The notes: generated by a model not told the origin, from the letters alone. Positions 43,696 through 48,940 are shown, numbered from the whole stretch's first letter. The stretch: 63,998 nt of DNA, filler included, from Neoconidiobolus thromboides FSU 785 (GCA_025603075.1; 6 parts of 6 records of this genome joined end to end with filler, not necessarily neighbours in it), one strand, 5' to 3'. Numbers and translations are program-made.

Positions 43696-44439
43696 AGATA
43701 CCGATTTTATTTTAGAAATATCCTCTAAATAGTTCAAAGGAACTTTATTTACTGGATTACCTTCTATCTTTAGTGTTTCAAGTGATTGAAAATTGGAATT
43801 ATTATTGAGAGTTGAAGGTATTGAAAAAGCTTCACTAATAACTATTAGCTTCTTTAATTCTTCAAATAACTCTTTCAACTTACCAAGTCCGTTTAAATTG
43901 GTTGAGATACATTTAATCTTTAATACTTTAAGCTTGTATGGATCAAGTAGATTGACAAAATGGTCTAGATCAACTGGATCATTAACGCTAACTGTTAGCT
44001 TCTTAACCCGAGATAATAAAGCTATATGCTTAAACAAAATAGACTGTTGATTAATTGTAATGGTTAATATCATATTCTTCAAATAAGGTAGTTCTTGTGG
44101 TATTGAATTATTCAATATATCAATATCGGTCAATTATTTATGTTCAATATCCAAAATTACAATGTCTAGACATAAAACTAAAAAGCTCAACTGATCACTT
44201 TTTATCTTCAAATATTGTACATTGTTACTACGATATTCATAGAAAGAATGTTGAACATATGAGTAAGTTGATGAACTCGAATAAACTGAATAACACAAAT
44301 GATTAAAGATAAGCAAGTTGATTTGTTTAAACAATGCTTTGTTTAAAAATCTTAAATCAAACAGTTGATCTGAAGGTAAGAAACTGAAGATAGTGTCAAT
44401 GACAATATCAGATGAAGTATCTAGTTTTAAAGTATTCAT
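43696..44439 (-). pseudogene. F-box/LRR-like gene with one in-frame TAA (44134-44136); 3' end lost in gap
   Basis: F-box-like IDTIFSFLPSDQLFDLRFLNK; same frame continues EHK*LTDIDIL into LxxLxI repeats. Confidence 0.6.
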
Positions 44440-45188
44440 TTTATAGATTGGATAGAAAAACCAAGACATCAAGTTCTCTTTATTTATATCATTTATTATT
44501 ATATATATTACATAAAATTTCATCTTACTTACTTATTTTGCTTATTTAAAGTGATGTAGGGTATATAAAGATTAATTCATCATTGCTTATTTATATCAAT
44601 ATTCAAGCAAACACTTTCATAAAATATTGAATAAACACTTTGAAAATTTGATACACAATTTTAGCTTCTACAATTTTACTTATTTAATATAACCTATAGG
44701 ACTTGCTAAAAGAACACAAAGTAGCATTCCGAAGTTCGCATGTCGTATTAAATAGACTTTTTAATTGTGATGTTATACTGTTTGATCAAATAGAATACCT
44801 TTGACATTTTTTAACTAATAGAGAAATACAAGCATGAATGTCGAAGGTCATAAATGGTATTTCTATCTTGAAAATCTTAAACCCTAGCAGTAAGTATTTG
44901 GTTTGACGTTTTCTGTAAAATATTGTGATTTTGCCTAAGGTGAGTCAAGTTTATATAGGACAGTTTATACAATCTATACAATAATTAATATTTGAAAAAA
45001 TTATCATTTGCTAAAAGTATTGGCTTTTTGAAAAAAGTTTGAGTTAAATCTTAGATTAAAATAGTATTTATTGAATAGAGTTTATTTCAGAAAATCTTGT
45101 TGATTATAAAGCGAGTATGTATCTACAAAACAATAGTTTATCAAGGATGTGCTAAACAGTATGCACTATACTTTTTCGAAAATAGTAT

Positions 45189-45293
45189 ACAAGGCTGTTT
45201 TTTTTTGTTTCATTATTTTTCCATTTTTTTAAGCGCTATTTAAGTGGAAAATTTGTTAGTAAAATTCTTAAACACAAAAATACATTCCCATAT
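45189..45293 (+). mobile_element. MITE family A copy
   Basis: Matches consensus. Confidence 0.8.
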
Positions 45294-46465
45294 ATTAGTA
45301 TTATGACTAACGTTACTAAAATCGATCTCCTTGTTTCAAAATATTTAAAGTCTTGATATTGATAGTTTATACTATATTTTCGATAAAATAAAAAAATTGA
45401 ACCTCAATGAGAGTGAGATTAAGGATATTACTCAATACAATTTGTGTGAATGCAAATTTGTAAAGGGAGTTACAATTGATTGAATTGATAATATTTCATC
45501 TAAAGATTTTTTTACTTCTCGTCTTTGTTCTAAATCCTAAGGTAATTAATTAACTATTTCGAATTAAATAATATGGATGTTAATACTGATCACGAATTGA
45601 TTACTCCTTTGTTAATAGTCACGCTTGTATTACCCCCTAAAAATATTATATTCTTTGGCAAACCAAGACAAGTCTCAATGCTAACTTAGTTGAGTTTAGA
45701 AATGAATCAACGTATATCTTAGAATATTCCATAAACTGACTTCTAGTAAACCTATTTCAGTCTCTTATATTACCTTAGAATTTTAGCTACCTTTTCTGCT
45801 AATTTTTTAATTTTTTATCATTGTAATAAAAATAGGAAATAATTGTAAGAATCTTTTAGTAACTTTGAAATTTAATAGAGCCTTCTTATTGTTGTTATCC
45901 AGTATTCTAATACTTTCAGGCTAATAGTCAATTGGCAATTTGTACGTGAAAGTCTTTTTTCATCTTAAATATCCTTTATAACGTCAATTATCTTCAATTC
46001 CACAGTCAATAGAGCCTTTAGTGTGATAATATTGAGTATAGGCTTTCAATCCTTGAAATTCTCAACTATCACATTTGACGTTCGATATTAAAAACTAATC
46101 TAGTGAGCTTTTTTACGCGATGGGGTTGGCGCCTGTTTTACTACTTGGATATTTTACTATCATGATTAGCATCGAAAACAGTGCTAGATATAATATTTAA
46201 GATTGTTCAAAAAAGACAATTTGCTATTCAGGTATAGGAATAAACCAATTTCTTTAACTATATGTAATTAATCTCTCGAAATTTAAAAGTTCAATAGTTT
46301 TATTTGTAGCTAAAAAAACAATGTGATATTAAATTACTATCAGGCTATTAAATACAATGTTTGAAATGGTATTAAATGAAAGGATGTAGTTTTAAATCAT
46401 TTATTATACAAGAGGCTTTATACAATACCCCAAAGTTTTAACTACTAGAATATTGATTGATTTGT

Positions 46466-47497
46466 TTATCTAACATATTGCTGAATCCATTGCGCATAGG
46501 TATTTACACGAGCAAATACAGAAGGAAAGTCAGGATTAAGACATCTTAAATCTTTGACAAAGGAAGTAACACCAATGATAGTATTTCCAATAACAAGTGG
46601 ACCTCCAGAATCACCTTGACAAACAGCCGAACGACCTTCACGATAACCAGCACATAAATGATGAGGTTTAGACAAACCTTGATAAGCAGCATTACAAGAA
46701 TCAAAAGAATAAACGGGAAGGTTGGCTTCTTGCAATCTTGAAGCTAATCTATACTGATCATTCGGATCCACTCTACCCCAGCCTGCAAATCGGGTTGAAG
46801 CGCCTTCTTGATTACCAGTATTTTGAGTATCAATTTGGTAAAAATTACGTGCACTAACTGGAGTTGCTAATTTCCAAATAGCAACATCATATTGAATATA
46901 ACCGCCAGAACTATAATTGGGATGCTTAATGATTTGGCTTACACGATGTTCGGTATATGAGCCATCTGGTCCACTCTGGGCTTGAGCTTGTGGTTGCTGG
47001 TGCTGCTCTCCTTCTTGAGGCCACCATGGTTGTTGTTCTTGTTGTTGTTCTTGTCCTTGTTGACCACCCCACCATGGTTGTTCTTGTTCTTGTTCTTGTT
47101 GACCACCCCACCATGGCTGTTCTTGCTCTTGTTCACCGCCCCACCATGGTTGTTCTTGCTCTTGTTGATCACCCCACCATTGGCGTCTTTGGAGGTTACC
47201 GCCAGCGTATGCCCATACAGAGACAGAGCCAGGGGAAACTTCAGAACAGTGAGAAGCTGTCAAAACGGTGTTAGCATTGAGAAGGGCGCCGCCACAGGAA
47301 TGCCCGCCATTAACACGTAAAGAAACTAAAGATGGATAGTTAGCCCATGAACCGGTATTACCATTAATAATTCTATTAGTTGGAGTATCGTCTGGCTTTG
47401 TTGAATTTTTATCGGCTGGTGCAGCTTGTGCTGAAGTAGCTAAAATAGCTATGAAAAAAACCTCAAATGCTTTAATTAAAATTTCCTTTTGAATCAT
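46466..47497 (-). CDS. Secreted S1A (trypsin-fold) serine protease with internal Q/E/W-rich repeat insert
   Basis: Signal peptide; activation site R|IING; CGGALL; LTASHC (His); YDVAIWKL (Asp); CQGDSGGPL (Ser); single exon. Confidence 0.95.
   Translation of the reverse strand: MIQKEILIKAFEVFFIAILATSAQAAPADKNSTKPDDTPTNRIINGNTGSWANYPSLVSLRVNGGHSCGGALLNANTVLTASHCSEVSPGSVSVWAYAGGNLQRRQWWGDQQEQEQPWWGGEQEQEQPWWGGQQEQEQEQPWWGGQQGQEQQQEQQPWWPQEGEQHQQPQAQAQSGPDGSYTEHRVSQIIKHPNYSSGGYIQYDVAIWKLATPVSARNFYQIDTQNTGNQEGASTRFAGWGRVDPNDQYRLASRLQEANLPVYSFDSCNAAYQGLSKPHHLCAGYREGRSAVCQGDSGGPLVIGNTIIGVTSFVKDLRCLNPDFPSVFARVNTYAQWIQQYVR
46975..47185 (-). repeat. Coding tandem repeat encoding (Q/E)n-PWWGG units
   Basis: CCACCATGGTTGTTCTTG-like units repeated on + strand; five WW-containing units. 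Confidence 0.95.
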
Positions 47498-48621
47498 TTC
47501 AATTTAGTATCAAACTTAATTGTATATGGATAGCAGTTACATACACTTTTCTTTTATAGCTTTTTTGAGCGCATTTTTGTAGTTTTAAATATTAAGCGCT
47601 TCATATTTCTATGAAGGAATATGAATATGGATATTCATCAGCAGCCCCAGACTTAATAAAGACTATTTCATAAAATCAAATTTTGTTACTATGGATTTTT
47701 AAATTTTTTAAAGTTTTTAATTTAACATATTTTAAAAGCTGCCTGGGCACTTTTAATATATTTGATAAAGTAAATATAAACTGGTAAAGAATAAAATAAT
47801 AGTTTAATTATCTATTTACCAGGTTAAGTAGGTCCATATTATTAAAAAATAGTTTATATCTATTTAGACACGTAAATCATTATTAAACAATAACTTCAAT
47901 TAAATTTAGTTACTATAGGTAAAAACCCTAGGAGTTTGTTACTCAGGTTAAATTGGATCAAAGCGTAAATCTACATTATTATGGAAATGTGTTTATAGCT
48001 TATATTGCACTATATCAATAAGCAAAGCCTTTATTAATAATACAACAGATATGAATTTTTATAAATTGTTTACTTGGGTATATAATGTCTTTCATTTTTG
48101 TTTGTTAAAAATAGTTCAAGTATTCAAGCTATTGATTATAGATAGGAAAAAAAAATATTTCGATTTTTTAACATAATCTTGCTAAAAATATGATCTTTTA
48201 ATTATATGATTTAAATGTTATACTAAATAACCCATAATGTTAATTTTTATAGAAACTAACTTTTTATTAAAAAGAACGATAATTTATCGATCAAATATAC
48301 ATTTTAGTAAAAATATTATTAAATTATTTGATTTAATCAATTTTTCTACTGAAATACTAAACTAAGAACAGCTGCTCGTTTTGCTTGTGATAATGCTTGT
48401 ACTTACAATCAATCAATAGTACTGATATCATATTTAACATTTAACATTTAATATTTGGAACAAAACTACATTATGATCAAACATATAAATAGGCAAATAA
48501 ATGTATAAACTCCTCTATAAAAAAAATGAAGTTTGATCAATCATTTAACGATTCATCATATGAGATATTCAAATATGTAAAGGCAATAGACATACTTAAT
48601 TTATAACTGCTAAATAAGAAC

Positions 48622-48940
48622 ATATGGGGTTGTCTGAATTAGTTTCATTATTTTATCCAATTTTAAAAAAATTTGTATTTTAAAAACTTCGCTTAAAATT
48701 CTATAAAATCACATCTTTTATTAAAACAAAAGTACCCAAACACAGTTCTAAACCATTATATTATAGCTCATACTGTAAGTTAGTTGAATTTCTACTAGAT
48801 CTTAAATACATGTTCTTATAAAGCTTAATTGAGAAATATTTATTATCAACTGCTTTATAACCAACATCGTAGATTTATTATCAAATAAATAAACTACTTT
48901 AATGTTATAATTACATTATTAATATATTGCCAAGTTAATA
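48622..48940 (+). mobile_element. Family B element arm (longer MITE relative)
   Basis: Starts ATATGGGGTTGTCTG; inverted ~90% similar copy at 49048-49365. Confidence 0.75.

Follow-up and report, generated by a model that had tools for sequence, protein, structure and literature searches.

The window analysed here, 63,998 nucleotides of Neoconidiobolus thromboides FSU 785 (GCA_025603075.1) in six parts joined end to end with filler, contains the complete gene of a secreted, probably elastase-like S1 protease whose catalytic domain is interrupted by a low-complexity insert of 71 residues. N. thromboides, formerly assigned to Conidiobolus, is an insect-associated member of the Entomophthoromycotina. 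We consider it probable (roughly 0.6) that this insert is translated and forms an intrinsically disordered expansion of the 70-80 loop, remade by repeat slippage and kept as a flexible exosite or tether. The size of the insert, its regular Trp-Trp punctuation, its site inside the S1 barrel and its persistence across a clade of paralogs are unusual.

The gene encodes a member of peptidase family S1

The ORF scan found the gene as a single exon of 343 codons and a stop; its product begins with a signal peptide and a short propeptide and contains a full S1 protease domain, which Pfam recognized (Table 1). P0001, the public model from N. thromboides FSU 785, was 100% identical to the ORF across the parts that the two share. 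The gene is carried by a 5245-nt scaffold (43696-48940) that is very AT-rich, with flanks of 19-30% GC. No ORF of at least 50 aa was detected by the scan in the flanks at 44524-46465 (about 1.9 kb) and 47498-48940 (about 1.4 kb), and the protease gene is thus isolated on a small scaffold. At one end of this piece, positions 43696-44523 on the minus strand hold two ORFs of the same frame, 44134..44523 and one running to 44133, split by one TAA at 44134-44136. By eye, the N-terminal part of this pair resembles an F-box, and a faint LRR_9 match (E=0.29) was obtained for the second; the locus could be a pseudogene or could hold an unrecognised small intron, with the gene running past the edge of the piece.

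Table 1. Features of the protease gene and its product, in positions of the window.
Feature	Position	Strand	Basis
S1 (chymotrypsin-fold) protease gene, single exon, complete, secreted product	46466..47497	-	ORF, Pfam PF00089, P0001, Foldseek
Signal peptide, residues 1-25, ending AQA (cleavage site predicted from sequence alone)	47423..47497	-	Hydrophobic N-terminus; helix 3-21 in model
Propeptide, residues 26-42, ending Arg42, followed by mature N-terminus IINGNTG	47372..47422	-	Aligned to trypsin R/K↓I(V/I)(G/N)G activation site
Catalytic His83 (chymotrypsin His57)	47249..47251	-	Invariant column
216-nt stretch, codons 94-165, GT..AG intron in public 271-aa model, probably a mis-annotation	47003..47218	-	P0001 compared with ORF
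Arg104-Arg105, dibasic, N-terminal edge of insert, candidate kexin site	47183..47188	-	(K/R)R-Q in all four Q-rich members
Low-complexity insert, residues 106-176	46970..47182	-	Absent from insert-less relatives in alignments; pLDDT <50
Catalytic Asp204 (chymotrypsin Asp102)	46886..46888	-	Invariant column
Catalytic Ser297 (chymotrypsin Ser195), within GDSGGP	46607..46609	-	Invariant column

The product matched the Trypsin profile with E=8.5e-41 and 140.6 bits against a cut-off of 20.6; the match fell into two stretches with the insert between them, and no other Pfam domain was reported. In an 18-sequence alignment the catalytic residues stood in the order of the chymotrypsin triad, and Cys68, 84, 268, 282, 293 and 319 were all invariant, pairing by alignment as the disulfides 42-58, 168-182 and 191-220. 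The segment TNR↓IING was aligned with K↓IVGG of trypsin, i.e., with an activation site of the Ile16 type, and by this alignment the zymogen activation site is intact. AlphaFold2 modelled the core as a confident two-barrel trypsin fold (pLDDT 84-98), with residues 21-43 below pLDDT 50. In Foldseek the model scored against solved trypsins with target-normalised TM values of 0.85-0.91 and E-values down to 7e-22, and a phmmer search of PDB sequences split the query into residues 40-102 and 185-340. By every testable criterion (profile, triad, fold, activation site and disulfides), the protein is therefore a member of peptidase family S1. The original prediction of an S1-fold protease with a repeat insert between the catalytic His and Asp, and with intact triad and activation site, was borne out by the ORF, which reads as claimed with small shifts of the insert boundaries (46970-47182 instead of 46975-47185).

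The fold of a trypsin is probably not accompanied by its specificity. Alignment to salmon and hamster trypsins gave Ala189/Val190/Val216/Ser226 for the S1 pocket, in place of the Asp189 with Gly216/Gly226 that characterizes a strict trypsin cutting at Arg/Lys, and with Ala at residue 189 trypsin specificity is unlikely. The pocket residues are encoded at 46607-46640 and 46520-46570 on the minus strand. The pocket of this protein, named 'trypsin-like', probably is elastase-like, with a preference for small hydrophobic P1 residues, and among the next-best matches of the related protein P0004 many were elastases and chymotrypsin C. The acidic ligands of a trypsin calcium loop were also missing, Glu70 and Glu80 being replaced by Gly and Tyr in an alignment that is approximate at the loop edges.

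The insert is a Trp-punctuated repeat placed by alignment in the 70-80 loop

The polypeptide runs from LTASHC, which holds His83, through GGNLQRR into QWWGD-QQEQEQ-PWWGG-EQEQEQ-PWWGG-QQEQEQEQ-PWWGG-QQGQEQQQEQQ-PWWP-QEGEQHQQPQAQAQSGPDG, and from there into the HPNY strand and YDVAI, which holds Asp204; the part between LTASHC and the stretch of five (Q/P)WW motifs reads ...VSVWAYAGGNLQRR. The five motifs are spaced by (E/Q)n and GG and are followed by a Q/P/A-rich tail ending in SGPDG. The insert contains 28 Q, 12 E, 10 W and 10 G, lacks Lys and Arg, and has a net charge of -13. Tandem Repeats Finder reported periods of 33/39 nt in 3.4-4 copies with about 80% matches, and shorter sub-periods of 3, 6 and 12 nt, all multiples of 3. 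The score of 164-166 against a threshold of 50, together with 10 Trp in 71 residues, indicates a repeat beyond chance. The open frame was discarded as proof of coding because all six frames are open across this low-complexity stretch, which makes openness weak evidence.

When residues 104-172 were searched without the rest of the protein among 5.8 billion proteins, no match was obtained at E<=0.01; the inserts of the paralogs were too divergent to score even in this search. Pfam and the protein search likewise gave no described repeat or binding domain for residues 104-176, and a feature search with the insert in a protein atlas returned trypsin clusters only (scores <=0.74). Two candidates suggested by the look of the sequence, the PWWP domain (from the motif) and membership of the Pir repeats (from the layout of a Kex2 site and Gln-rich repeats), were ruled out, as Pfam matched neither and the segment has no predicted fold.

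In alignments with trypsins and fungal relatives, the extra residues follow the counterpart of chymotrypsin strand 64-69 and precede the strand leading to HPNY, and in the protein they lie between the strand ending near residue 97 and the GPDGSYTEH strand. The alignments, the AlphaFold2 model and Foldseek thus agree with the predicted placement of the insert in the 70-80 loop of the S1 domain. This loop forms exosite I in thrombin and the calcium loop in trypsin. Residues 100-154 were modelled with pLDDT <50 and no secondary structure, a value expected with or without disorder since the AlphaFold2 alignment contained only four sequences over the insert; the prediction is backed by the composition, and the insert is probably disordered.

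The annotated intron is probably a gene-prediction artefact

The public model P0001 has 271 aa, lacks codons 94-165 and joins GSVS directly to HQQPQ across an annotated GTATGG...GCAG intron. As most of the insert is removed in this way, and the original prediction had depended on its staying in the mRNA, splicing was examined. On the alternative reading, splicing would take the stretch out of some or all of the transcripts, as a genuine intron or as an exitron, meaning an intron-like segment within coding sequence; the GT..AG ends of the stretch, its length divisible by 3 and the low expression in the runs examined, which leaves room for a minor spliced form, are what would favour this. The protein speaks against it, since excision would drop Val94, invariant among the relatives, and half of the confident core strand 92-97. 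So does the composition: the 216-nt stretch has 51% GC compared with 40% in the rest of the coding sequence and 22-26% in the flanks, whereas the one real intron that was located in a neighbouring locus is 45 nt long, starts with GTAAGT and has 18% GC.

The splice sites themselves are unremarkable. Skipping the insert in frame is possible through 17-26 GT..AG pairs per paralog, since Gln CAG codons supply the AG ends, and a homology-guided predictor can always find such a pair. The paralogs described below, P0002 (324 aa), P0003 (339 aa) and P0129 (302 aa), were annotated in the same set as single-exon genes that retain their inserts, and length arithmetic indicates that 9 of the 11 complete gene models near the paralogs are intronless.

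In the RNA-labelled runs, contigs pass through both annotated sites unspliced and without mismatches. One exact-match contig (47094-47284) covers the 5' site, reaching 66 nt into the exon and 125 nt into the insert, and another (46919-47158) covers the 3' site, reaching 84 and 156 nt to either side. The 47218>47003 joint was found in none of the Logan contigs over 46380-47580 from four RNA-labelled runs, whose library type is a guess, whose depth over the insert is 2-3, in which DNA carry-over is possible and whose contigs drop rare forms. Three RNA-labelled runs from a single study contained the 31-mers of the insert at shares of 0.50, 0.46 and 0.18, compared with 0.20 for the whole gene; the run with the assembly's own species label contained none of the insert's words. 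Taken together, removal of the stretch as a real intron or exitron appears very unlikely. The public intron is probably a mis-annotation, and the insert, which preserves the frame as originally claimed, is probably kept in the mRNA.

The insert is also not an artefact of assembly, another possibility raised with the original prediction, since its exact 31-mers were present in four DNA-labelled runs that include other samples and studies. Two of these runs, flagged as possible sources of the assembly, contained the full share, and the other two, from other samples and studies, contained shares of 0.86 and 0.59. Furthermore, an RNA-labelled contig (run X2, 46919-47158) was otherwise identical and 6 nt longer, with an additional TTGTTC (plus strand) at 47077 that encodes one extra Glu-Gln. 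This is an in-frame length variant of the type made by repeat slippage, and the repeat number probably varies between isolates.

In addition, very deep contigs (word depth 500-2300) of the RNA-labelled runs X1-X3 and X6 were aligned at 46585-46625 and 46831-46912. Their matches, which include mismatches, are confined to the short conserved segments GDSGGP and DVAIWKL, beyond which the contigs continue into unlike sequence; this indicates that other trypsin-family genes are highly expressed in those libraries and the insert-bearing gene barely (depth 2-4).

An enlarged loop persists in one clade while its content turns over

The search of paralogs for repeat variation, suggested along with the original prediction, uncovered enlarged loops of differing content at the same site in four further proteins. 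The N. thromboides protein P0002 has QWWP/PWWP (PWWPQQQQ) with Q and P runs and a charge of +3, and P0003 of the same species has PWIPQEQQPQM units and a charge of -2. P0129, also of N. thromboides and 41-46% identical to the query, has about 35-45 residues rich in S/N/E, with no Q repeats and no dibasic site. P0004, from a 1567-nt Logan contig, has an insert of about 115 residues that is Q/G/N/P-rich with Tyr and Phe. An HMMER search of 1.84 billion representatives returned mostly multi-domain polyserases and one new member, P0129; beyond it, neither this search nor the one made with P0004 gave any further insert-bearing member of the clade.

The locus of P0129, the fourth paralog, is at L003:3001-3909 (+) on N. 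thromboides scaffold MU626678.1. In its product GDSGSP replaces GDSGGP, CARHMED replaces CAGYREG and further conserved positions are altered. A cytochrome P450 gene (L001:6411-7724, -) adjoins the gene of P0002, and a tyrosinase gene (L002:10971-12692, +) lies 2 kb downstream of that of P0003. Tyrosinase and trypsin are both families reported to be expanded in the insect-pathogenic Entomophthoromycotina, the trypsin-domain genes greatly so, with 43-204 copies (PMC10079182).

When the insert was masked for the tree, all five insert-bearing proteins grouped in one clade with support of 100/99. The insert-less P0147, P0005 and P0006 were sister to it, and P0004 and P0129 sat on long branches (1.2-1.4). 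A single insert-bearing clade with such branches indicates that the loop was enlarged once and then stayed so for long while its content changed. For the three close paralogs, dN/dS of the mature core was 0.09-0.12 (about 0.1), i.e., strong purifying selection, and the insert had a dN of 0.35-0.54 compared with 0.06-0.09 for the core, a 5-7 times higher value, with many in-frame indels. The dS of the insert was saturated and alignment-dependent and was set aside, and positive selection was therefore not inferred.

These rates bear on the explanation that the insert is a neutral passenger, in which the loop would tolerate nearly any length or sequence and slippage-prone runs of Gln and Glu codons would expand and drift with no function. 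The radical difference of insert content between paralogs with cores 75-80% identical, the span of net charge from -13 to +3, the faster substitution of the insert, the non-repetitive S/N/E-rich insert of one paralog and the empty result of the insert-only search all speak for it. Against it, all members of the clade have kept an enlarged loop over branches longer than 1 substitution per site, and four of them repeat the pattern of aromatic residues (W, W, W/I and Y/F) beside Pro in a Q-rich setting. We hold this explanation possible, at odds well short of even. If it were true, the insert would be an ordinary low-complexity expansion.

No dibasic site separates the repeats

The insert opens after Arg104-Arg105, and a basic pair followed by Gln is found in all four Q-rich members. 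The original prediction had offered, as one reading, an excisable peptide released at this site to yield repeated WWGG peptides. Kex2-processed repeats would have KR or RR bounding each unit; here a lone RR precedes the first unit, neither the junctions between units nor the stretch after the last one has any, and the C-terminal end has no conserved site. The excisable-peptide reading is therefore poorly supported, and the lone site gives no set of repeated WWGG peptides.

A single cut is a separate proposal. A kexin-type convertase of the secretory pathway would cleave after Arg104-Arg105 and leave a two-chain enzyme whose second chain starts Gln-rich, and a second cut near Ala/Val/Ile by the end of the insert might release an insert peptide. 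The recurrence of the pair in the Q-rich members agrees with this, as does its place at the start of a low-confidence and presumably exposed segment. However, the insert-less relatives carry basic pairs one aligned position away (NVRRHDL, NIKRHDL) in a short structured hairpin, and a pair at a nearly identical position without any insert means that RR need not be a processing signal. In addition, P0129 has no such site, and no disulfide would link the two chains, as the six Cys pair within each part. Such processing is thus doubtful.

The loop may serve as a flexible exosite or tether

The explanation that we favour, a flexible exosite or tether remade by slippage, starts from a zymogen made for secretion, in which a signal peptide is followed by 17 residues of propeptide and the R↓IING site; its intact catalytic domain presents a long, acidic, Trp-studded loop at the position of exosite I. 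The loop would have been enlarged once, in the ancestor of the small clade made up of the four N. thromboides paralogs and one contig. The insert would be tolerated because both of its anchor points neighbour each other on the surface; both ends of the loop leave the folded N-terminal barrel facing away from the catalytic cleft, which would make folding and catalysis compatible with a flexible appendage of 35-115 residues. Since the enlargement, in-frame slippage of repeats in codon-multiple units, together with fast substitution, would have remade the content into (E/Q)n-PWWGG in this protein and into PWWPQQQQ, PWIPQEQQ, Y/G/Q-rich and S/N/E-rich forms in its relatives, and the catalytic core has meanwhile stayed under strong purifying selection. 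The appendage may then have been kept because it anchors the enzyme to an insoluble substrate or to the wall of the fungus itself, with contacts made by aromatic residues spaced by polar linkers.

Retention across the clade and the recurrence of aromatics beside Pro in a Gln-rich spacer suggest a weak, multivalent docking or tethering role for the loop. The content of the insert is not conserved between relatives, and a neutral passenger fits this as well; that reading is nearly as good as a docking or tethering role. What relates to the adhesion or condensation tag of the original prediction is confined to the predicted lack of structure and the composition of aromatics with Q/E/G, and as the insert-only search recovered a module of this kind from no other protein, nothing suggests a reusable binding tag.

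A stronger version would make the enlarged loop a selected, fast-diversifying targeting module inside the catalytic domain, whose aromatic stickers (Trp-Trp, Trp-Ile and Tyr), set on Gln/Glu/Pro/Gly spacers, tether the paralogs to different insoluble substrates or drive self-association. The candidate targets would be insect cuticle protein, chitin and the fungal wall, and the differing charge of the paralogs (-13 to +3) would tune the target. We regard this version as unlikely. If true, it would mean that an S1 protease can gain substrate targeting with no additional binding domain.

The S1 proteases belong to the most thoroughly studied enzymes. A clade in which a loop of 35-115 residues without predicted structure is kept at the classical exosite would offer a simple natural setting in which to ask how much disorder a catalytic barrel tolerates and whether loops of low complexity are able to direct an enzyme to its substrate. 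In practical terms, the analysis points to a probable mistake in public annotation, where the 271-aa model lacks a core strand, and to a wider hazard, as repeats with Gln CAG codons lend themselves to false in-frame introns.

Comparison with known systems

A literature search on trypsin inserts in Conidiobolus or Entomophthoromycotina and on low-complexity inserts in calcium loops found nothing specific. The original statement that no such insert had been described in an S1 protease thus held for the literature searched, but paralogs with similar inserts were already present, unremarked, in public protein sets.

Among solved structures, the protein resembles the Fusarium oxysporum trypsin 1TRY and the Saccharopolyspora erythraea trypsin 4M7G/5DK1 in fold (TM 0.87-0.91), triad, three disulfides and a signal peptide followed by a short propeptide. 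It differs from them, with their short 70-80 loop and Asp189, by about 70 extra loop residues and by its Ala189/Val190/Val216/Ser226 pocket. The insert-less P0147, P0005 and P0006, from Entomophthoromycotina and related metagenomes, are closer, with 40-49% identity, SFV..CLNP and elastase-like pocket motifs, and differ in having the short loop only (..RHDLR and 8-10 residues).

S1 proteases have repeatedly used the 70-80 loop for docking of substrates or cofactors away from the active site, and the insert shares its structural position with exosite I of thrombin and the calcium loop of trypsin. The loops of thrombin and trypsin are ordered and about 10 residues long, whereas the loop described here is long, has no predicted structure and, by alignment, has Gly and Tyr in place of Glu70 and Glu80.

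As for the content of the insert, surface loops of enzymes in the AT-rich genomes of eukaryotes such as Plasmodium and Dictyostelium commonly carry in-frame, fast-evolving, slippage-prone inserts of homopolymers or short repeats that the fold tolerates. Those inserts are mostly Asn/Lys or pure Gln/Asn, whereas here a regular Pro-Trp-Trp punctuation is present and the GC content of the insert is above that of the rest of the gene. Cereal prolamins and glutenins are alike in having Q/P/G runs with regularly spaced aromatics, and the fungal Kex2-processed repeat proteins are alike in having a dibasic site ahead of the repeat region. Both differ from the protease in that no homology to them was found, that no dibasic site separates its repeats and that its repeat region lies inside an enzyme domain and does not form a protein by itself.
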